64,000 nt of DNA, taken from Ylistrum balloti. Lineage: Eukaryota. The stretch spans positions 496,001 through 560,000 of the forward strand of contig NW_026782240.1 in assembly GCF_031769215.1 (NCBI RefSeq), in the 5' to 3' direction. Below the pieces are notes generated by a model, which saw only the letters and a list, made by a program, of their open reading frames with translations, was not told the origin of the DNA and made no database searches. Below, piece by piece: positions 3,301 through 44,600 of this stretch. The position numbers and the translations under genes are program-made. Within the stretch, counting starts at the first letter, position 1, and each line of letters opens with the position of its first letter.

Positions 3301-6300
3301 TTGTGTGGTGTTCATTAACGAGTCTAGATTTTCTTTGTACTACCAAGGCAGCAGAAAAAGGGTATATCGCAGATGCAGTGAGCGTTTTACCAATGTATGC
3401 ATGGTTATGCAATAAATTCTGAGGGGCTCATGCCATGGTTTGCGAAGACATTTCCTAAGAAAAATCTCAAAGCAGTCAGATACTGAGACAGATCCTCCAA
3501 CTATATTCAGCAAGAAAATGCTCGACCACATGTTGCTAGAGTCTGTCATGATTTTCTCACAGTGAACAATGTAAAACTTCTAGAATGGCCTCCATATAGC
3601 CCTGATATCTATTAAACATCTTAGGGATGAGCTTGATGGACAAACAAGAATACATAGAACCTCCAACTAACCTGGCCCAGATGAATTCAGCATTGACTTG
3701 AGGTAAATTAAACATTTTAAGAAATTTCATACATAAGAGAATCTGTACAGGAATCCTGGCCAGAGATGTCCACACCAGGTACTGAAGCATCATTTTCTAT
3801 AATGTGGGTATCCCACTCACAGTGACTAACAGTAATACAAGTGACGTCATACACACTTTCCTTTTCAGTATTGTAAAGAGTAGACTCATCCCTTAATTTA
3901 AATTTAAGGTTTTGTATAAATGTTCAAAACGATCATAAGTTATCAACTGCTTAACTCACTTGGGCCTTTTTTTGTCGGATATAAAATTAATGTATCATAG
4001 CAGTCATGATCTAAAAACTTACTTGGTATATGTTGGCTGCTGCTAGCAGGAATGCTAAGGTCAAGATGAAACCCCCATTGTGAAGCGTTGTAAGCCACAA
4101 ATATCACAAGGTAGGTCACAGAAATAGTACCTGAGCAATATATCATATGACAAAGACTTTTGTTAATCATTCATCAATAATATTACCCATAATATAATAA
4201 TAATATAGTATTACTCTGAATCTCTCTCTTCACTGCTAGTAGCATTTCCTCAGAAAGTGATTTACATAAACAGTTTTCAAAGTGCATTTGCAAAAGTATT
4301 TTTTATCTATTGAGAATATTTCATTATAGCAGGAGCACACAAGTGAAAATGATAAGTAACACACAAACAATATCATTGTTTTGTAAGTTAATAGTGTTGC
4401 ATATTAAAATGAATTCCTTTGTGACTCATACTTAAGGACTTGGCAACAAATTGCCAGGTGCTGGCTCTAAATGAAAATCCTGCCCTTTACAAGTATTGAA
4501 AAAGATAGCTTTTTTCACATTGTTAAATGAAAATTATTGACGAAGATAGCTTTTCATTATCTACTTTTTATTGTGTTACAATACATAGGGTACAGATACA
4601 TAGGGTCAAGTATACAGATACTCACCTAAAGAATTAAATTTTGTGAAGAAAGTAGGCGACTTAAAGTTGATAAGGGGGAGAAGTACAGCGACGAGGAACA
4701 ATGGCACAGTGTGGTCCTCCTGCCAAACACGGTCAAGGGTGGCATCATGGGTGTGGCTAGCTGACCCCATCCACATCAGGTGTGGAAGTGAGTTCATGCT
4801 GGCATTATGAGTTAAGTACACAGAACCATTTTGCCCAGCAGGTGGGTGAGGACAAACTGTTAAAAAATTCCATTTATCATAACATGTATGATAATAACAA
4901 AAGATACATATTGATGCATGTTTAAAATTATGATGTAGTTAGCACCAAATGCATCTACTGGGCAGTATATTGATAGCACTAAACAGAAGGTATGTTACAC
5001 AAAAATTTCCACATTTCTATTGGTTATTTTAATTAAATTAGTTCTATCAACATGTATTCCAGACAGCTTGTACTACTCATCTGGATATCTAAATCAACAT
5101 TCAAAGTAATTTTAGTATACAATAGTGTCTGTCATCCATCTGTTAACAAGTACTTAAAACAATTTCTTCTAATTTAACTGCAAAAATCCTTATGTGATAC
5201 AGACCAGAAAAGCTAACAAGATTTTGAAGAAACTACCAGGCACAGACAATTACTGAACCACTGAATCTCTATGAGAATTGGTTTAGAGGTCCTCTCTGGA
5301 CAACATATAGACAACATTAATACCCTGACCACACTGTAATGGGCAACATATAGACAACTTTAATACCCTGACCACACTGTAATGGACAACATATAGACAA
5401 CTTTAATACCCTGACCACACTGTAATTGACAATATAGGAACAACTTTAATACCCTGACCAGACTGTAATACACAACATATAGACAACATTAATACGCTGA
5501 CCACACTGTAATGGACAACATATAGACAACTTTAATACCCTGACCACACTGTAATGGACAACATATAGACAACTTCAATACCCTGACCAGACTGTAATGG
5601 ACAACATATAGACAGCTTCAATACCCTGACCAGACTGTAATGGGCAACATATAGACAACATTAATACCCTGACCATACTGTAATGGGCAACATATAGACA
5701 ACATTAATACCCTGACCACACTGTAATGGACAACATATAGACAACTTTAATACCCTGACCACACTGTAATGGGCAACATATAGACAACATTAATACCCTG
5801 ACCACACTGTAATGGGCAACATATAGACAACTTTAATACCCTGACCAGACTGTAATGGACAACATATAGACAACTTTAATACCCTGACCACACTGTAATT
5901 GACAATATATAGACAACTTTAATACCCTGACCAGACTGTAATGGACAACATATAGACAACATTAATACCCTGACCACACTGTAATTGACAACATATAGAC
6001 AACTTTAATACCCTGACCAGACTGTAATTGACAATATAGGAACAACTTTAATACCCTGACCAGACTGTAATGGACAACATATAGACAACTTTAATACCCT
6101 GACCACACTGTAATTGACAATATATAGACAACATATAGACAACTTTAATACCCTGACCACACTGTAATGGGCAACATATAGACAACTTTAATACCCTGAC
6201 CAGACTGTAATTGACAATATAGGAACAACTTTAATACCCTGACCAGACTGTAATGGACAACATATAGACAACTTTAATACCCTGACCACACTGTAATGGA

Positions 6301-9300
6301 CAACATATAGACAACTTTAATACCCTGACCAGACTGTAATGGACAACATATAGACAACTTTAATACCCTGACCAGACTGTAATGGACAACATATAGACAA
6401 CTTTAATACCCTGACCACACTGTAATGGGCAACATATAGACAACATTAATACCCTGACCAGACTGTAATGGACAACATATAGACAACTTTAATACCCTGA
6501 CCAGACTGTAATGGACAACATATAGACAACTTTAATACCCTGACCACACTGTAATGGGCAACATATAGACAACTTTAATACCCTGACCACACTGTAATGG
6601 GCAACATATAGACAACTTTAATACCCTGACCAGACTGTAATGGGCAACATATAGACAACTTTAATACCCTGACCAGACTGTAATGGACAACATATAGACA
6701 ACTTTAATACCCTGACCAGACTGTAATGGACAACATATAGACAACATTAATACCCTGACCACACTGTAATTGACAATATAGGAACAACTTTAATACCCTG
6801 ACCAGACTGTAATGGGACAACACCCTGACCAGACTGTAATGGACAACATATAGACAACATTAATACCCTGACCACACTGTAATGGGCAACATATAGACAA
6901 CATTAATACCCTGACCACACTGTAATGGGCAACATATAGACAACATTAATACCCTGACCACACTGTAATGGGCAACATATAGACAACATTAATACCCTGA
7001 CCACACTGTAATGGGCAACATATAGACAACATTAATACCCTGACCACACTGTAATGGGCAACATATAGACAACATTAATACCCTGACCACACTGTAATGG
7101 GCAACATATAGACAACTTTAATACCCTGACCACACTGTAATGGACAACATATAGACAACTTTAATACCCTGACCAGACTGTAATGGACAACATATAGACA
7201 ACTTTAATACCCTAATCAGTCTAAAGGACAGCATGTAATGAGTGGACATTCTTTTTTAACAATAATAAATACTCACTGTAATCTTTAGAATTTTGTGTGG
7301 AATTAACAGCATCAGAATCTGAAGCTTTGTCTAAGAATCAAAACAAGAAATTCTGTAATCATCCAGTCTTAATATACTGCATGTAAAAACTTTAGAAAGA
7401 TGAATATAACTTAAATTTTTTCAATGAAAAATTATGTTTGTCTCAAGAGAAAGATGGCAATGATTTTGATAAAGTGAATAACATTGTTTTGATGTATTTA
7501 CTTTACATGAAACATGAACATTTTACACAAAAATTATAAAACTATAAAACACAAAAATTTAAATAAAAACCTATAACCTGACTATGTATACTTACGGTAG
7601 ATAAAGGTGACAATATTGTAGAGAAAATTTGACATGAGTATCCAGTAGACAATGGCCCCGCCCAAAAGTGTCAGAAGGGATGAGACTACTGCCAGAATCT
7701 GGGCCCAACGACCCAGATAATGTTGACATACATCAGAAAAGTCTAAAGCCTCACTTGTGGAATCCGATGCTGTCAACATTTTAACATTCTGTTAGTTTAC
7801 ATATGTACATATATAGAACTACACTGAACATGTGCACAAAGAACAACAGATGTTTCACACAAATGTCCATTTAATGGTTTTATAACAGGACTGAATTTAT
7901 GCCAATTAATTTTCTGTGTAGTTAACACAATCAATTTTCTGTGTAGATAACACATAATTGTATTGAGAAGACTTGGGTTACATATTTATGCCTTGTACTG
8001 CTGTCAGTGTGTCACTAAGATTACTTACACATGTCCTGTACTGCTGTCAGTGTGTCACTAAGGTTACTTACACATGTCCTGTACTGCTGTCAGTGTGTCA
8101 CTAAGGTTACTTACACATGTCCTGTACTAAGGTTACTTACACATGTCCTGTACTGCTGTCAGTGTGTCACTAAGGTTACTTACACATGTCCTGTACTGCT
8201 GTCAGTGTGTCACTAAGGTTACTTACACATGTCCTGTACTGCTGTCAGTGTGTCACTAAGGTTACTTACACATTTCCTGTACTGCTGTCAGTGTGTCACT
8301 AAGGTTACTTACACATGTCCTGTACTGCTGTCAGTGTGTCACTAAGGTTACTTACACATGTCCTGTACTGCTGTTAGTGTGTCACTATGATTACTTACAC
8401 ATGTCCTGTACTGCTGTCAGTGTGTCACTAAGGTTACTTACACATGTCCTGTACTGCTGTCAGTGTGTCACTAAGATTACTTACACATGTCCTGTACTGC
8501 TGTCAGTGTGTCACTAAGATTACTTACACATGTCCTGTACTGCTGTCAGTGTGTGACCAAGGTTACTTACACATGCCCTGTACTGCTGTCAGTGTGTGAC
8601 CAAGGTTACTTACACATGTCCTGTACTGCTGTCAGTGTGTCACTAAGGTTACTTACACATGTCCTGTACTGCTGTCAGTGTGTCACTAAGGTTACTTACA
8701 CATGTCCTGTACTGCTGTCAGTGTGTGACCAAGGTTACTTACACATGCCCTGTACTGCTGTCAGTATACGGTAGCTGGTGTATAACATGAGGCCTGCCAT
8801 CAATACCAGCAGTATAATGCCAGTCACAAACCCGGCCTACAACAAGCAAAGACCAATTAACCAGTACATTTAATCCTTAAAATGATGGTTCATCCTTCAA
8901 CCTTGACGGCAAAATAAAAACATAAGAAAGAAAACAATTTTCCTACATTTTATTCTGCAGGATAAAAACTTGAAAGTTTTAAGAACTCTTTTTTTCAACA
9001 AAGCTGTCCCCAGAAAAAGCATACAAAGGTACATTCCTATTCTTTATTTGCAAAATATTACATCTACCCATGATGCCCCAAAATTCTTCAATCTGGTTCA
9101 CCTCTGTTATATGTTCAAAATGACCTGTCTCACCATGATATTGAACATCCTAAACATACAAATGCTGTACCTGTCTTATTGCCCAAGGCATACTTAAGAT
9201 TGATGTCCCCATCATGGTATTCCAAAGTGAAAATCTACAAGACAAATCAGTATGACATTAATTTCAAAACATGTTGTATGTTTTGTCATCAAAAATACAT

Positions 9301-12300: not shown

Positions 12301-15142
12301 GTGAATCTTTCATTGACTAGTGGGTTTTAAATGACTTAAAGGACATGTTAAGCACTCAACTTTGCAACAGTGTCATGTATAGGTTTCCTAAAATGTACCA
12401 CCTGATCAACAGTGATGAAATATGCAACAAAGCAAGGCAAGACATTATGTCACAGTGTTCAGAGTAAATAAAACAGATTGAACTGCATATCAAACAAAAT
12501 CTAGGCTGAGGATCAGGGTATTACTAAACCCCTTCCTACCTATCCTAATCCTGGCTGTCAAGATTTTTTCAAAACAACCGGACAGTGAGACAATGAAATT
12601 AACACTGAGAGAATGTGTAACATTAACATCTGTATTGCATTTAAGTGTCTTTACAGGACAGAGTATACATCAAAAATGTTAGAATTATAACTTCTGTAAT
12701 TTTTGCAAAGAGTAAAATGATCCTGAGTTAAGAAGGGAATCAGCTAATGCACCACCTGCCTGGGCCTGGCGGAGTTTGAACACTAGTTTTTAATGCTACA
12801 TGTATATATTGCAGCAGTTGAGATTAAATGATGTAGTCCCTGATCCGCAGCAAAAAATGTAAAAATTTAGTTGTTTTTCCGACACAGGATCTTTGTTTAT
12901 CAACACAGGATTTGTTTGATTTGGAGTCACCAGAAAGAACTATGTACTGTATATACCAGGATATTTTCACCCCTTCAAATTATTATTGCAATTGTACCAG
13001 TATACACAAATTTATCTCATTTTCATTTCAGTCTCCGACAATTATTTAGAACAGTTATATAAGTATAAAAAATTTGTGCCCTCATCTTAAATTTGCCTTT
13101 GCTTCCTATTCATGGACAAAAGGGGCAAGAATTAAATGGCTTATTTATTTATTTATTTTATTTTACAGGTTTTACATCCACTATTATGGCCTTTCAGGCA
13201 ACAAGTAAACATAGGGGCGAAAGAATACCAGTAATTTGAGTATACAGTAACGCTGTGAACGTTAATACACAAAATCAAAAAATAACACCATGGTATCCAT
13301 TAAACCTGAATGTTAGGTCAATAATTTATCAGAAGAAATACCTGACTCTCCTACTATTTCCATTTGTATTCCCATCATCATTGACCCTGTGAATAAAAAA
13401 ATACTTTTATATAGACATGTACACAAATATATATGTCATGAGGCAAAATCTGTTCAGTTACAGAAACCATTCCTTCTTATGTTAACTGTTATATGAAAAT
13501 CAGGATATAAGAGCCTTATCTGCACTGATTTGATATTGGTTCTTTGGGGTTTTCTCCACATTTATTTGTTTTATGAAAAGTTTGAGGAAAATTTTCAACA
13601 TTTTCAAGAAATTATAACTTAATCTGTACTAGACATTGGAATGGCAGCTGTAATAATGGCTACAGATGATAGTAATAGTTAAGTCTTCATTGATGTCTCT
13701 GGATGTTTGTGAGGACACAGGCAAATTGTTCTAGGCCTGGATTTATAAATGAAACTACAAAGCACAGGGGCATGCAACAGGAATACATTGTCAAAAATCA
13801 AATTCACTAGAAACAAATATTATATATAGTGTGGCAGGATCAACTTTTAATATAATGTGAATTGTATTGTCTCCGTTATTGATAAATCCTGTTTAGTAGT
13901 TTACATCTATACTGTATCTTGTTCATCAGCAGGGCTCTCACACCCCATTTTGGGACTGGGGCCCAGGGCCCTTAGAACTGGGAAAAATAATGGTTTTTCC
14001 TTAGAATTGGGAAAACTTGGGGTCTAAATTGGGAAAAAAAGATACTATTTTGCATTGGGAATGGGGCCGAATATTGGCCCCAAATCTGGCAGATCGAGAG
14101 CCCTGATCAGTCACGTGTATACCTAAGGGTTAGTCTCGTAAATTGCCTCCCTATATAGTGTCATGTGGTCAGCTTAATTTTGTCTTGTTTCACAGTCTTA
14201 TGTCTTATTTTACTGGTTGTTTTGATTTTGTAGTATTTGTAAGTTGCGGTCATTGTTTGACAGACCGATGGGTGGATCGTATGCTTTGTAACAGTAATCT
14301 TGAAATACCTGTCACCAGTAAAACTTTACTTAACTATCGATCAATCAATATCAAAATGTAGACACATCTGTTTGTCAGCGAAGTTTGTGCTACACACAGA
14401 GTTCATACTCTTTCGATGTCTATGATAAACTATGGTCAGAACTCGCCACTGGTTTCATGTCATTATTGAATATGATATACCCAATCAGTATCATGTAGCA
14501 CATTCTAGATTGTTAGGAAACTTGATAAATGACAAGCAATGAGCATGTAATGTTAACAATGCCCCTGTGCTCAAACTAATATAACTTGTAAGTAACGTTA
14601 CGCCGTGTTATCATATACACTATACACATACTCCTGATCAGATAATAACATATAACATCTGACTATTTCCCACCCCAGTTTGTAAAACCCATTGAATTAC
14701 ATTCATACGATTGCGAGCGCACTTGCATTCATCCGTATCTAGCTGCTACCGGATGAATTCCTCACTGTTCACATTTGACAACAGGCATGTCAAGGTAAAA
14801 CACAAAAAAGTGCTAGGTCTAGCTGAAAAATGCGACGCGACACGGGGAAGTGAAAGACCCGTAGAAGATAAATGATACACATACTTTTTCATCATTTCCA
14901 GCTACAGTAAATGTGAAATCCTATTCGCCATGAATAAAATATATAGTTAACACGGTTTGACGTGGTTATGTTTATACGAACAGCATAGCAAAATGACAAC
15001 AATAAAGCCTTACGCTCTGGGTAGAAGAAGGGGAGGTTCTCGTTTGAAATACTCACTCCGATTCCTCTCTGATATCATCGTCGTTGAGATGAAGGGGCGA
15101 TTTTTCATCCCCACTGCTACTGTCGGGTGATGACCCACTCAT
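308..15142 (-). CDS. SLC38A9: Lysosomal amino-acid transporter / mTORC1 sensor SLC38A9 (3' end runs off the window)
   Basis: 14 phase-consistent GT-AG exons: 15057-15142, 13342-13386, 11857-11971, 11201-11286, 9171-9234, 8743-8836, 7596-7769, 7277-7330, 4626-4856, 4023-4130, 2338-2444, 1976-2080, 1170-1318, 308-397. Hallmark motifs: [101 protein letters not shown]. Confidence 0.95.
2644..3871 (+). mobile_element. Degenerate Tc1/mariner DNA transposon in an SLC38A9 intron
   Basis: Broken plus-strand frames give [25 protein letters not shown] (WxxVLFSDESRF-like) and [37 protein letters not shown] (QQDNARPH / WPxxSPDLNPIEHLWDEL-like), with stops and frameshifts. Eroded TIR-like ends near 2645 (acacttgactaagaaaagaaatgc) and 3853-3871 (acactttccttttcagtat). 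Confidence 0.85.
5298..7213. repeat. 43-bp minisatellite, about 44 copies, intronic
   Basis: Unit ggacaacatatagacaactttaataccctgaccacactgtaat repeated head-to-tail with a few recurrent variants. Confidence 0.98.
7990..8765. repeat. 43-bp minisatellite, about 18 copies, whose unit spans the SLC38A9 exon 6 end and its splice donor
   Basis: Minus-strand unit ACTGACAGCAGTACAGGACATGT|GTAAGTAACCTTAGTGACAC; the first copy is the true exon end and donor at 8743/8742. Confidence 0.95.
9780..10700. repeat. Degenerate ~120-bp tandem units resembling the internal satellite-like core of bivalve Helentron/HINE elements
   Basis: Recurrent aagttcaaaggggcataactctg...aatcaaactt...ccaaatttcatttcaataact...ggaaaac; 10430-10550 is nearly duplicated at 10610-10700. 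Family assignment from memory of the motif style. Confidence 0.6.
13930..14105. mobile_element. 176-bp MITE, hAT-like, 10-bp TIR, 5-bp TSD
   Basis: CAGGGCTCTC...GAGAGCCCTG perfect TIRs, flanked on both sides by ATCAG (13925-13929, 14106-14110); several internal TGGGAA motifs. Confidence 0.8.
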
Positions 15143-20163: not shown

Positions 20164-21783
20164 TCAGTTTTTGTAGTACTTGATGGTTCTTATTTCAGAC
20201 TCATTGGATTCAGACAGCACATTTAGGACCCTTCCAACCAATCCACTTTTGTTCAGAAGAACACACACCACACCCACAGCATATCGCCTGACTGAATGCG
20301 AATTGCTGATATGCCATCTGTGTTCTTCTGTATTGCTCCAATGTACATTCCTTTTCCACTGACCAGCTCTACATCATGAAATACAGTTTCAATAACTAAA
20401 TTGCTTCTGTTGTCATAGACAGCTGACCATGGACTGAAATGTGGTTGTCCATCAGTTTCATCTCCTCCGTAGTTAAATAGGAACTTTAGTGTTTTCTCAA
20501 ACACAACAACTTTCCTACACCGCTTGTCATCACGTTGTTTACACCTATATACTACTGCAAGGTTACTTGTCATTGGACAGTGTGAAACAGATCTTGGCAT
20601 CGTGTAGCTCTCTTCAACATCGACAGAGTTTAACACGTGGCCTTCTGTTGTGTAGACCTTTATACTGTGCAAAGTACACACCGCTACATTTTCCTCTCTT
20701 GTTATGCAAAGACAAAATGTTTGCGTATCTGTTGTAAACCTTGCCTTTGGCGAAGTTGAACCAGGAACAAGTTCAAAGATTGAATTGCTTCCGAGGCAAA
20801 TAAACCAAAGACTGTTTGTTTTTGGTGAAGTGCAGATACATGGTATGGTCGAACATTGCTTGATCTTATGTTTTATATTACCTCGAAAGTCCACTAGTAA
20901 CAACTTGTCAGACTGCCAATGACTAAGCCAAACACCACTGGGAGTTGGGCAGATTGCAGAGCATTTCATAGGATTCCTGAAGTGTTTCTGTACAGCTGGT
21001 AGTGCAAGCAAGTCCACGTTTGGAGTTGTCTTATGGTGACTGACATCGGAAGGGACCTCTGTAACTGGACGTTGTGCAGTTGTACCCCGAGATGTTGTGT
21101 TAGTTGATGTCGATTGGTCTTTCGATATAGTCAAAGTGCCAAGAATTTTTCTCAGTTGTTCAGTGATGGATGTTCGAGATGGATGAAAGTCAGCGTCATG
21201 CAAGATGGGTTCATCAGGATGTGCAGGAATATCAGTTGAAAGAGCGGGCGATTCATCGTACACCTGAACTGGGCTTCCAGTCTGTAACACCATTTTACAA
21301 TCTTTTATTTGTTCAAAGAGTGACTCGTAATTGTTCTTTAGCTCGACTTTGTACAAAATCTTTGTTCTCCGCTGCCAGCCTTTTGGATAGTGCGTCATAC
21401 TTATCGATTATGACGTCAATCTCCTGTTTACAGACTTCACCCTGCTGCTTTACAAGTTGACAAGACTCTTGGAACTTTGCGTCGTTTTCAGCTAGTCTGT
21501 TGTCAATTGAATCCATTTCTTTCTGGAGCTGGACAAGATCGTTATTCTCAATGTCATTAATAAAATTCTGCAGTTTGGTTTTCCTTTGTAATGTAACATC
21601 CGAGAGCTCCACGAGACTGTGTCACTTGTGAGTGGAAAGGCTGCATGTAAGACAGATAAGAATATTACAGTCCGAGCAGTGTAACAGTACATCCTTATTT
21701 CTGTGGACAGCACACTTAGAGCTCCCCTTCGCCCTAATAGGTGTCTGGCCATGGCTCTCTACCGCAGGTACGCTTGCAGCCAT
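20164..21783 (-). pseudogene. Intronless B-box / coiled-coil / NHL-like beta-propeller (mollusc-expanded TRIM-like) pseudogene
   Basis: MAASVP..GQTPIRAKGSSKCAVH..CSDC..CLTC..THK*HSLVEL has an in-frame TGA (21622-21624) where Gly is expected. Coiled coil follows, then a frameshift near 21350-21360 into LKNNYESLFEQIKDCKMVLQTGS, propeller repeats (AICPTPSGVWL, FCLCITREENVAV, PWSAVYDNRSNLVI), and a probable third lesion near 20270 before ..TIKYYKN*. Confidence 0.8.
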
Positions 21784-23869
21784 GACCAACGCTCTAATAT
21801 GGCGCCACACACCCGGATGTAACGGGAACACATCCTCGGTTGTTATCATGCCTACACGTATACATTTACACTTGAACAACATCATGATATTGCAAAAACG
21901 GAATGAATGCAGTCATGTGTCTCCAGACAAACAGAATATATACAAAAAAAATTATCTCTAATTTTAAAATTTGCTCAACGAAAACAAATTAATTCATAAT
22001 ACCAGAGAGATCAGTTTTCTGGTACCTGGATGTAGTTATATGACTTGAAATATACACAACATTAAACTGCTAACCCGTATTGACTACCCAAACAAGTTTG
22101 AATGATATCCACTGAAATTAAACAAATGATGTTAATGAAAACTACAGAAAACTATATCTCTCACAAATGCACAATTTTGATAAAGCATAATCAGTATCAT
22201 TCTATCATATCTGGGTATTGAGAAGAAGTTTTTGAAACCATTATGAATCATTTTGGCCCCATCCTGGATGTATCTGGGTATTCGGGACGACCTATATGAT
22301 TTGAAAATCGGTTCATGAATCGATTCATGGGATTTTGAGAAATAGGGTCGATCATGTCGCAAATGTAGATTGTTTGCATTCACACAATGTCGGACAAAAA
22401 GGCGACGTAGGTCACGTGTGATTTCCTCTCAGGTGACCTTAAAACCAAGAAAAAGTCTTAAAACTATGATAACCAGGTGGGCGCAAATATTAATAAAATA
22501 TGTTGAATTTCATTTTTTTTATTACCTTTTCCCCAATTTTTCAGGGAGTGGGAAGGGGGGGGGACACGTAGTTGTAAGATAGAACGAAAGCTTACAAAAT
22601 CCAGGCTATCTAGATTTCGCAAGTTGCATATATATATTTTATATTAAAACATCATGTAGTACTAGTACATCGTTATGTTCTTAGTATAAAGAAAGTGGTT
22701 TACTTGCAAAAGCGATGGCTGTATGTATGTGAAGGTTTGATATATGAATCAAGAAGTTTACATCCTACCATACTTTCAGTACATCAATGCGCCTGTCATT
22801 TCCTACAGTAACTTGAAGCCCTTTGTGTCCGAATCTTTCAATTACAAACCAAAGCTGCAGTAGCTGAATTTAGATGATCCAAGAAACATTCCTTTCCGAC
22901 GTGCTATTTTTTATATTTCTTCTTGGCACAGCTGTACCATATGGTTGCAATGACCATTTGGAAATTTGTCTAGTACCCCTAACGCTATGACATTTTTACG
23001 TCGTAATCGTATACACTGACAGCTGTATTACAATTAACCTACCGTATACCTTATGGAAGCTTGCTTAAGCGGATTCGGCTAATACTGCTCCTGACGACCT
23101 GTGGTAACTAGCTTGGAAATTTCATAAGATTATTGATGGAACTGAAACAAATAAGTTCAAGTTCTTTATTACCTTGAGTCGTGTGACTCATTGGTTAAAG
23201 CAAACAACACATAGACGATTTACAAACATATAACAATATACAAAAAAAAACAGAAACAACACAAACCCGGAGAGAGTAAACTAGGCTATCAATTGCGGTT
23301 TTCTCTTAAAATGCAAGCTGCCTTAATATATTTAGACAAGTTTGTTATTTCTTTTGTATTGTTCGCATTTAAGAATTCTATCAATTTAAACATACTAAGA
23401 CTCTTAACTATTTGTCAATTTTTGAAAGCTGAGTTGGCAATTAAGAGAACGGGTGCTTTAAACAGTAATATCTGTTCAGGGTTACACAAATACATAAAGC
23501 TACTCGAAGTCTACTGCGTTTAACTTTTCAATAACAAACAAATGCTACAACAACTTAATAAAGATGACCTGAGAGCTCTCAATAGTGGCGAATTCTGAAT
23601 AAGGGCAAAGTTAGGAGAGGGGTGAAGGGGGCGGGGGTCCAAATTGGCTCAATAATGATAAAGAACAACACCAAACCAAATGGAAATCAACACTTTTCAC
23701 ATAATACTATATATATTGTTACATGGCCCCTGACATTCGATGCTATACCCCCTGGACAGGTTGTGAACGGGGATATCGGATTTGTATGTCCTGAGCAGGA
23801 TATCCACGGAAAGTCAAGGCTGTACGTGCTGAACAACTTGCTAACACCCGCGGGAAGTCGAGAATGTAC

Positions 23870-41600: not shown

Positions 41601-44600
41601 GTTAGTGTAGTGATATAGATAACATTTAGTACAAGTTTCTGTCCTTTAGGGCAGTGTGGTTAGTGTAGTGAAGTGTAGTGGATATAGATAATAAGAATTA
41701 TGGAAATCCAATTCAATACAAGTGATTTCAAAATTAGTTTATTCTTAGAAATATCAAAGTTTTTTCCCCCCAACTTATCTTGGGGTACAACTTTTAAACA
41801 AATTTTAATCTTTATTTTAACTCTAAAACTTTGTCTGAATAAATGAATACTTACCTGAACCCTGAACTTCCACAGGGTGCCAACCTCTACACCAGGAATG
41901 GACCCAAAATGATTTGCTGGAACAACTGTGCACACATTCTGTCGGCCCACACAAGCCATTCCCTGAAATAGTGAGATTTCCTACCTTTAATTCTGCACTA
42001 AAGATAGTCCCTTCCATGAACATATTCTTGTTCATAAAAATATAACATAGGCTTCAAAATCAATCTAATCTTATTCTTAACACATATGCATTATGGTCCT
42101 AATGGTACTACTTGCAGAAGTTTTAATTTGGTCCTAATGGTACTACTTGCAGAAGATTTAATTTGGTCCTAATGGTACTACTTGCAGAAGATTTAATTTA
42201 ACTATATTCACAGTCTAATGCATCATTAAATAGCTGTCAACTCTCAACAACAAGGACAAACCTAAAAATTGGCTTCAAGAAATTAAAGAACTACAAAGTG
42301 TCCAAGGTAGTTGATAACACAAAAAAAGTTATTACTATCCAACCTTACCCTGCCCCAATCTTGTCTTGTATAGATATTAATACAGAACCTTACCCTGCCC
42401 CAATCTCGTCTTGTATAGATATTAATACAGAACCTTACCCTGCCCCAGTCTCGTCTTGTATAGATATTAATACAGAACCTTACCCTGCCCCATTCTCGTC
42501 TTGTATAGATATTAATACAGAACCTTACCCTGCCCTAATCTTGCCTTGTATAGATATTAATACAGAACCTTACCCTGCCCTAATCTTGCCTTGTATAGAT
42601 ATTAATACAGAACCTTACCCTGCCCTAATCTTGTCTTGTATAGATATTAATACTGAACCTTACCCTGCCCCAGTCTCGTGTTGTATAGATATTAATACAG
42701 AACCTTACCCTGCCCTAATCTTGTCTTGTATAGATATTAATACAGAACCTTACCCTGCCCCAGTCTCGTGTTGTATAGATATTAATACAGAACCTTACCC
42801 TCCCCCAGTCTCGACTCGTGGAGTTTGTTGATGATGCCATCCTGGCTTTCTTTTTGCTTTCTTTTAACTTCTCACCAGCTTTTACAATTGCATCACTGTC
42901 TGTTTTACAATCTGGACAATACCTGTAAAAGTATCTGTGTGTAAATAAATTCATCAATGTGTACTGAAACATGTTTTCCATCATGTATACAGGATACCAG
43001 ATATTTGGTTTTCAAACTTTTTGATTTTTTGTAATATGTGTTTGAAAAATTTCGGCGTATATCAGATACATCTAATGAACTCCAACCAACCTTCTGGAGA
43101 TTATATTACACATACATGTACAACTCATTGATCTTAAATCACTCTTTCATTATTCCGAATTGAAGCCAAACTTGTTGCTACAAAAACTTATCACCACTTG
43201 TGAGGTAATTTGCCCTCTAGACACATCTAAATTCTGTCTTATCAAAAGGTATACTTTTCTGAGGAATATTTAAGATTAGTATACTGCAAATTCATGCGGA
43301 GAGAGATTTTTGGCTAGTCACTTTCATGGTATGGGTTTAAGAAAATGTATACTGCTACAAAGAGTGAAACAGTATATCAGTGTTACAAAGACTACAAGGT
43401 GAAGTAAAAGCACTTTAACGTAATCTTTCTGCTACATCATAGAAATTGCTCTTCATTTTGTTTTGAAGTAATTTTCACATGTGCAGATGCACAGAAGTCA
43501 ATGAAAGACCAGATAGTATCCTATTAGATAACATGATATCAAATAGAAAATTGTAAAAATTTGGTTTTAATAATGAACACATCAGATGAAGTATCATTTC
43601 ATGTGCGATTAAACATTTTCAAGGCTCCCTAAAAAAATTGCAGTGTTAAGGGTAATATCATAATGAATTCAAAATTTGATCAAAATTAAAATACACATGA
43701 ACATGCTGTTTTCCCAATTTGGAGCTGCCTCCTCCTTGTCATTGGACTGTATAAAAACCTACCACTCATCGTCCTCAGGAATACTGTCGAGCGGAGGGTT
43801 CATACACTGGAGATGGTAGGCCTGGTCACACTCATCACAGAGGATCTGTTTGTCAGGGTCGTTCTTACCACCACACACACAACAAGCACAGTGCTTACAT
43901 TTCCTACGAGGGTTGTCCATGCAATGACTACAATCTGGCTTGTTCTGACCTGCAGATAAAACAATGAAAATAATCAAATGCCTCTCATCATGTGAGGAAA
44001 AGTTGTGCAATGACAAGCACCGTAAAGGTTGGGTCTTATGTTTTATATACATTTATTTGGTTGCTACTCAACAGTAAACAATTGATAAAGTTCACCATAA
44101 AAGTTTGTAAAATTGCTTTCTGGCAGATGATTTCCCATGGTAACATACGCTAACTTACGTTTCACAGGTGATTGTGACGGATCTTTAGTAACATCTTCCA
44201 CATTAAGTTGTGTACCAGCTTTTTCAATTTCAAATATTTCATTCAAAAATAGAATGTTGCAGTCATCAAGAGGCATGAGGTCAGGGCTGGATAGAAAAAA
44301 ATTAATCATAACTGCAAGCTTCTGAACTATAATCAACACCTGTGGCTTTCTCATTGCAATTTCTTTTATTAATTTGATGCAAAATATAAATATTCTTGAG
44401 CAACTTTTCACTGTAGATCCAAATTTTGATGTTCATATCAAAAGAAGGATTATTTCTTTCAGTTCATTTTGTAAGCTCCTCAGCTACAATAAATATCTTT
44501 TTGCTCCATGTAGATGTTTTTATGCAAAATAATACAAGAAGTAACTTTGTAGATATAAAATTTGTTATTTTATCAGGAAAAAATGCTTTTCAATTAAAAA

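Follow-up and report, generated by a model that had tools for sequence, protein, structure and literature searches.

Gene and exon structure of the locus

The DNA considered here is a stretch of 64,000 nucleotides from the saucer scallop Ylistrum balloti (contig NW_026782240.1, positions 496,001 to 560,000), referred to below as the window. On its minus strand lies the gene SLC38A9, in which one intron opens with a tandem array of 43-bp units that repeat the end of the preceding exon together with its splice donor. The coding exons on either side of the array, 6 and 7, match the zebrafish SLC38A9 structures 7kgv and 6c08 colinearly (7kgv_A residues 133-160 and 171-220) and are 100% identical to XP_060073701.1, annotated as "neutral amino acid transporter 9-like [Ylistrum balloti]". 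A tblastn search with this protein gave 100% identity within the exons of the window and placed the start codon at 15142, which makes the exon in front of the array the sixth coding exon, as an earlier reading made from the letters alone (the sequence-only reading) had numbered it. A protein search with an exon outside the repeat (4627-4854) returned proteins named SLC38A9 from molluscs and other phyla, and Aa_trans (PF01490) is the precomputed domain of the SLC38A9 orthologues. The gene is thus an orthologue of the characterised SLC38A9, a lysosomal amino-acid transporter.

Anatomy of the repeat array

Tandem Repeats Finder places the 43-bp array at 7994-8765, in two rows (7994-8128 and 8126-8765) with matches of 96-98% and scores of 263 and 1182. 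It consists of 17 full units arranged head to tail, one 26-bp partial copy and one decayed end copy, and together with the register table it bears out the sequence-only reading's description of an exon end and donor repeated in SLC38A9 (Table 1). The hexamer GTAAGT occurs 18 times in identical context; one of these donors is authentic and 17 are decoys, where the sequence-only reading had counted about 18 decoys. The decoys have their G+1 at 8699, 8656, 8613, 8570, 8527, 8484, 8441, 8398, 8355, 8312, 8269, 8226, 8183, 8140, 8114, 8071 and 8028, and none of them comes closer than 258 nt to the acceptor, whose AG is at 7771-7770 and beyond which exon 7 opens with CATCGGATT. Splicing from a decoy would retain GTAAGTAACC... 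in the transcript and join ...ACATGT to CATCGGATT. Units 1 and 5 are identical, and most interior units have GGACAT where the exon reads GGGCAT, which turns the glycine codon GGC into GAC.

Reading on past the first donor gives ATG TGT AAG TAA, a stop two codons after the junction, and splicing from the first decoy in silico yields ...AVQGMCK-stop with at least 8 coding exons still downstream. The sequence-only reading had correctly placed the donor (between 8743 and 8742), the stop met on reading through (TAA at 8737-8735) and the acceptor in front of 7769, and it was right on the consequence of decoy use: such transcripts are a likely target of nonsense-mediated decay (NMD), by which they would presumably be degraded.

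The array is single-copy in the genome. An origin from a dispersed repeat or a transposon was considered and rejected, as the unit finds elsewhere in the genome only chance-level matches of 67-72% to unrelated minisatellites.

Table 1. Features of SLC38A9 around the array, in the order of transcription (positions in the window)
Feature	Position	Strand	Basis or remark
SLC38A9 coding exon 5, aa 112-132	9171..9233	minus	100% identity to XP_060073701.1 by tblastn
SLC38A9 coding exon 6, aa 133-163 + 1 nt, AGFVTG...TAVQGM	8743..8836	minus	translation; PDB match to zebrafish SLC38A9 residues 133-160; 100% identity to XP_060073701.1
Authentic 5' splice site TGT/GTAAGT, G+1 at 8742	8737..8745	minus	local join of exons 6 and 7 equals annotated protein aa 133-221 exactly
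Unit 1, last 22 nt of exon 6 + first 21 nt of intron	8722..8764	minus	register table
In-frame TAA, kept with any decoy use (...AVQGMCK-stop)	8735..8737	minus	sequence reading
16 full 43-bp decoy units (units 2-17) + 26-bp partial copy inside 8162-8094; 17 decoy GTAAGT donors	8008..8721	minus	Tandem Repeats Finder, register table
Terminal decayed 18th copy	7965..8007	minus	register table; GT and donor core gone, about 8 of 38 nt differ
Candidate branch point CTAAC, 22 nt upstream of acceptor	7791..7795	minus	read from sequence
Acceptor AG of the 973-nt intron	7770..7771	minus	intron without the repeat would be ~216 nt
SLC38A9 coding exon 7, aa 164-221	7596..7769	minus	PDB match E 6e-11; 100% identity to annotated protein

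Comparison across scallop genera

The orthologous genes of Mizuhopecten yessoensis, Pecten maximus and Argopecten irradians were retrieved and their exons mapped. M. yessoensis carries a homologous array at the same donor and in the same register, with a unit 1 of 43 bp followed by 35 decoy units. Homogenisation (matches 85%) has brought these to a variant of 40 bp without the GCA, among which three 43-bp units survive; GTAAGT is kept in 27 of the 35 and the GT in 29. Over 40 aligned nt, 3 substitutions separate the decoy consensus of Mizuhopecten from that of Ylistrum. In P. maximus the intron is plain, 608 nt long and without an array, and the hexamer that starts the unit, CTGACA, recurs in it 44 nt downstream. 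A. irradians has no array either, but its GTAAGT is followed directly by a second copy of the end of the exon, decayed and in a different register. The score of this relic (L009:5346-5375) was reached by 8 of 2000 shuffles and its 13/13 match to the Ylistrum exon by none of 2000; it retains TACCGTATACTGA, the state of the Ylistrum exon, while synonymous changes have since arisen in the exon of Argopecten itself. The four genera therefore present decoy counts of 0 (Pecten), a relic (Argopecten), 17 (Ylistrum) and 35 (Mizuhopecten).

Synonymous divergence (dS) between Ylistrum and Mizuhopecten is 0.68 and ranges from 0.54 to 0.93 over all pairs. The ratio of nonsynonymous to synonymous divergence (dN/dS) is 0.07-0.11 in all pairs, and SLC38A9 is therefore strongly constrained with or without the array. 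The single-gene tree of the four genera is weakly supported (80/71 and 86/89). One origin of the array before the split of Ylistrum and Mizuhopecten, followed by loss, appears likelier than two, because the two arrays share their register, the surviving 43-bp units and the GGACAT variant.

Donor strength and the probable choice of the first donor

The scallop's own genes for U1 small nuclear RNA (snRNA) start with ATACTTACCTGG, to which each TGT/GTAAGTAA site (the slash marks the junction) offers 7 contiguous Watson-Crick pairs, from +1 to +7. On the exonic side the TGT departs from the consensus, and the authentic site and the decoys are identical from -6 to +8. The U1 snRNA genes themselves stand in tandem clusters on three contigs (C800, C571 and C604), spaced by about 1.17 kb on C800 and about 1.4 kb on C604, with at least 42 matches above the Rfam cut-off.

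In local folding, the probability that positions -3 to +6 are unpaired is 0.051 and 0.042 in the two GGGCAT units as against 0.002-0.009 in GGACAT decoys, and no such difference between sites is seen when only +1 to +6 are considered (0.02-0.09). Masking of the decoys by RNA structure was rejected, the difference in accessibility being too weak to carry an explanation.

The annotated products are all joined at the first donor. The scallop cluster comprises XP_060073701.1, the proteins of M. yessoensis, P. maximus and A. irradians, and 5 transcript contigs of Argopecten; all 9 of these read ...TAVQGM/S(S/T)DS... across the junction (the first slash being the junction), which is the product of the first donor. 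For SLC38A9 in Y. balloti a single protein model is annotated, and it is joined at this donor. A search for fragments ending in ...GMCK, with residues 1-163 of the Mizuhopecten protein as the query, returned no scallop fragments of any kind and is hence uninformative. From the annotated model, the evolutionary persistence of the array and the experiments on F7 described below, we infer that the first donor is the one used in vivo.

Selection on the decoy donors gave no clear signal. In Ylistrum none of the 7 variable columns of the array falls in the 11-nt donor core (P ~0.13); in Mizuhopecten the losses of G+1 trace to about 2 events copied by higher-order repeats, again with no clear signal either way.

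Minisatellites and junction arrays elsewhere

To set the array against its genomic background, an annotation-free sample of 20 stretches of 10 kb was taken at fixed intervals from two contigs (L013-L032; contigs C74 and C30). The sample is small. A minisatellite was defined by a period of 15-120 and at least 3 copies, and a 9-mer was called donor-like if it agreed with CAG/GTAAGT at 7 or more of the 9 positions with the GT fixed. The 200 kb contain 56 minisatellites, about one per 3.6 kb, which occupy 21% of the bases, and with so much of the sample filled in this way it is not far beyond chance that an array should sit on a donor. A donor-like 9-mer is present in 13 of the 56 units, against 4.2 in shuffled units and 5.9 in random genomic segments of equal length, a count reached in 1 of 300 resamplings; the exact GTAAGT is found in 7 units where 3.3 are expected, a number that 8 of 300 resamplings reached. 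The same units showed no enrichment of control motifs, whether reversed, acceptor-like or scrambled. These counts suggest that donor junctions are over-represented among the seeds of scallop minisatellites. A simple reason could be that, if the upstream-most site is chosen, duplication of a donor does no harm, since the real donor comes first, whereas duplication of an acceptor would, since the real acceptor comes last. One array in the sample, of 32 copies of 49 bp (L019:4432-5853), has a perfect CAGGTAAGT in its unit.

A broader proposal would be that splice donors are preferred seeds or survivors of scallop minisatellites, arrays of strong U1 sites being kept for long either as useful or, under choice of the upstream-most site, as harmless, unlike duplications of acceptors. 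We consider this broader proposal rather unlikely.

Further arrays at exon junctions were seen in the same gene and in the same window. In P. maximus the end of SLC38A9 coding exon 3 (...AGAAACAGCAATTTT/GTAAGT) is repeated about 6 times in the following intron (L008:3116-3362). M. yessoensis SLC38A9 has an acceptor-side array (L007:13273-13468), in which an acceptor and the start of its exon, ...TGTTACAG/GTACGTGACCTGG..., stand 3 more times in front of the real exon, the last copy being the authentic one. Intron 8 of the Ylistrum gene holds a 43-bp array of 44.7 copies (5297-7213, minus strand, 88% matches), which starts 63 nt past the donor of exon 8 (54 nt, 7330-7277). The 9-mer ATTACAGTG is common to its unit and the junction of that exon with its donor (P ~0.03), and from the exonic ATTACA to the first one in the intron the distance is exactly 43 nt; the orthologous introns of the three other scallops, 690-890 nt long, have no such array. 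In UHRF1, also on the minus strand of the window (42341-42813), a 45-bp array of 10.5 copies is made up of an exon end and a GGTAAGG donor, the same construction as in SLC38A9. The two arrays are alike in that exon end and donor are copied into the following intron, and they differ in gene, period, copy number and unit sequence. Between the two genes (20256-21912, minus strand) the list of open reading frames shows a frame of 384 aa with a B-box-like Cys/His piece upstream, of a TRIM/NHL-type look.

Proposed origin and persistence of the array

Two systems described in the literature provide a frame for these observations. Borensztajn et al. (2006, PMC1557585) studied a 37-bp variable number tandem repeat (VNTR) in intron 7 of human F7, the first element of which spans the exon-intron boundary, and showed that its pseudo-sites are functional and yet splicing takes place from the upstream-most site alone. 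Strengthening the pseudo-sites to a consensus value of 91 did not make them competitors. Perfect sites (100) did compete, but without putting the first site out of use. Ebner et al. (2010, PMC3087553) described the "mirages" of amphioxus, in which splicing is undisturbed, copy number varies between haplotypes and evolution is concerted with the edges excluded.

We consider it probable that the SLC38A9 array is a donor minisatellite of this known kind, a mirage or an array of the type of F7 intervening sequence 7 (IVS7), which is tolerated and in which the first donor is used. A mirage-type array has units of 10-160 bp placed head to tail, and here the period is 43 with about 18 copies. The first monomer holds the authentic exon-intron boundary, as seen from the exact match to XP_060073701.1 and from three orthologues. 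Evolution is concerted with the edges left out, and in Mizuhopecten homogenisation has led to a different, 40-bp variant of the unit. The terminal decayed copy in Ylistrum would fit edge copies that escape homogenisation, as they do in mirages (PMC3087553), and the array is presumably polymorphic in length.

We propose that the founding event was a small tandem duplication across the junction of exon 6 and its intron, probably seeded by microhomology between the short direct repeats CTGACA that lie 44 nt apart in the array-free Pecten. Slippage or unequal exchange could then have made the array grow and shrink, and concerted evolution would have kept it homogeneous. Unit 1 would remain the real exon end and all later units would be intronic, removed by splicing from the upstream-most donor with the protein unchanged. 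Selection would act on unit 1 only, where the glycine codon GGC is kept, with GAC in interior units. The 17 decoys would be strong yet silent or nearly silent donors, and any transcript using one of them would stop two codons later.

Several points weigh against this proposal. The decoys are strong, each with its 7 contiguous pairs to U1. Hodson et al. (PMC3413131) found in HeLa cells and in vitro that, where two strong 5' sites lie at least 45 nt apart, the intron-proximal one is used almost exclusively, a rule that would predict use of the last decoy at SLC38A9. The first one or two pseudo-sites are used in IFI6 and CBS, which would speak for some decoy use here; in LMNB2 and PDGF it is the authentic site only (cited in PMC1557585). 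Lastly, at a dS of 0.68 a difference of 3 in 40 nt is less than neutrality predicts, and this conservation of the decoy consensus could hint at constraint, although exchange with the selected unit 1 can explain it as well.

The sequence-only reading had offered two alternatives: either the first donor wins almost absolutely, or the length of the array is a tunable dial on productive splicing of a sensor for mTORC1 (mechanistic target of rapamycin complex 1). The former agrees with indirect evidence: the annotated protein and the three orthologues are joined at the first donor, the gene is under strong purifying selection in lineages with the array, a homologous array with twice the decoys has persisted in another genus, and F7 offers a precedent. 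The latter supposes that some transcripts use decoys, gain the stop and are degraded, such that array length sets the amount of productive SLC38A9 mRNA. It can draw on the full strength of all 17 decoys and their distance of 258 nt or more from the acceptor, on the confirmed read-through stop, on the use of the nearest pseudo-sites in IFI6 and CBS and on the intron-proximal rule for strong sites (PMC3413131). It also has a precedent, as a review (PMC7849579) ties variation in F7 repeat number to factor VII (FVII) levels, but it is unsupported at SLC38A9. Regulated unproductive splicing calls for an alternative site that brings a premature stop upstream of later junctions, which the decoys do in silico, and for an alternative junction that is used and regulated or conserved. 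Since Pecten lacks the decoys and Argopecten has no more than a decayed remnant, they are not a conserved feature of SLC38A9. With 0, a relic, 17 and 35 decoys in the four genera, the array in Mizuhopecten being twice as long, the protein is equally constrained throughout. The only annotated protein model uses the first donor, the pseudo-sites of F7 remain unused even at a consensus value of 91, and the like array in UHRF1, an unrelated gene of the same genome, fits a mutational by-product better than gene-specific control. A dial is therefore improbable.

A further alternative is that the array is a selected landing pad for U1, where many U1 small nuclear ribonucleoproteins (snRNPs) help the off-consensus TGT donor or protect an AT-rich intron from premature cleavage and polyadenylation. 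Such a role would agree with the block T-AAGTAATCTTA, which hardly varies among the 35 units of Mizuhopecten although positions -8 to -2 do, with the conservation of the unit consensus between genera beyond neutral expectation and with the enrichment of donor-like 9-mers in the minisatellites of the unbiased 200-kb sample (13/56 vs 5.9). Yet Pecten and Argopecten splice the same exon from the same TGT/GTAAGT donor without an array, the donor core in Ylistrum is not spared beyond chance (the 7 variable sites outside 11 nt already mentioned), and the conservation between genera is explained by exchange with the constrained unit 1. We regard this role as quite improbable.

That the array or its length should be an artefact of repeat misassembly is highly improbable: although the assembly offers one haplotype or copy only, variants follow an ordered pattern along the units, one copy is partial (26 bp) and the one at the end is decayed, and the independent Mizuhopecten assembly has the homologous array at the same donor.

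Taken alone, a tolerated donor minisatellite in SLC38A9 is one more intronic repeat, and it leaves our knowledge of SLC38A9 or of mTORC1 sensing unchanged. Its value is that of a natural test case for the choice of 5' splice sites, since a conserved gene has 18 equally strong donors within a single intron and the orthologous array has twice as many. The published rules disagree, since F7 points to the upstream-most site whereas the globin and adenovirus constructs point to the intron-proximal one. If the broader proposal of donors as preferred seeds or survivors of minisatellites were true, the SLC38A9 array, shared by two genera at a dS of 0.68 and with a separate relic in a third, would be a natural experiment: in vivo the first donor would prevail over 17-35 strong decoys spaced by 43 nt, contrary to the intron-proximal rule drawn from HeLa and in-vitro work.

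Comparison with known systems

A search of the literature for scallop repeats of the splice-donor-minisatellite kind found none. As in human F7, the first monomer spans the boundary and the donor is reiterated in the intron, with a period of 37 bp in F7 and 43 bp in SLC38A9. Unlike SLC38A9, with its 18 donors and perfect GTAAGTA on the intron side, F7 has 5-9 copies of a weak donor (TGG/gtgggt, consensus value 74), and only 4 nt of exon are copied there as against 22 nt here. The usage of sites in F7 was shown by minigenes, whereas the SLC38A9 array is known here from sequence.

The mirages of amphioxus, in Adh3 and the globins BflGb6 and BflGb9, are likewise minisatellite-like tandem duplications of an exon-intron boundary that evolve in concert with the edges excluded. 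The globin units, however, are 150-160 bp long, occur in few copies and affect both the donor and the acceptor sides, whereas SLC38A9 has a 43-bp array on the donor side, found in two genera. Human IFI6 (6-16), with 25 reiterated donors, and intron 13 of CBS, with 15-20 repeats, resemble SLC38A9 in the many donors that follow the authentic one. They differ from it in that their first one or two pseudo-sites are constitutively used, whereas in SLC38A9 the use of a decoy would meet a stop at once.

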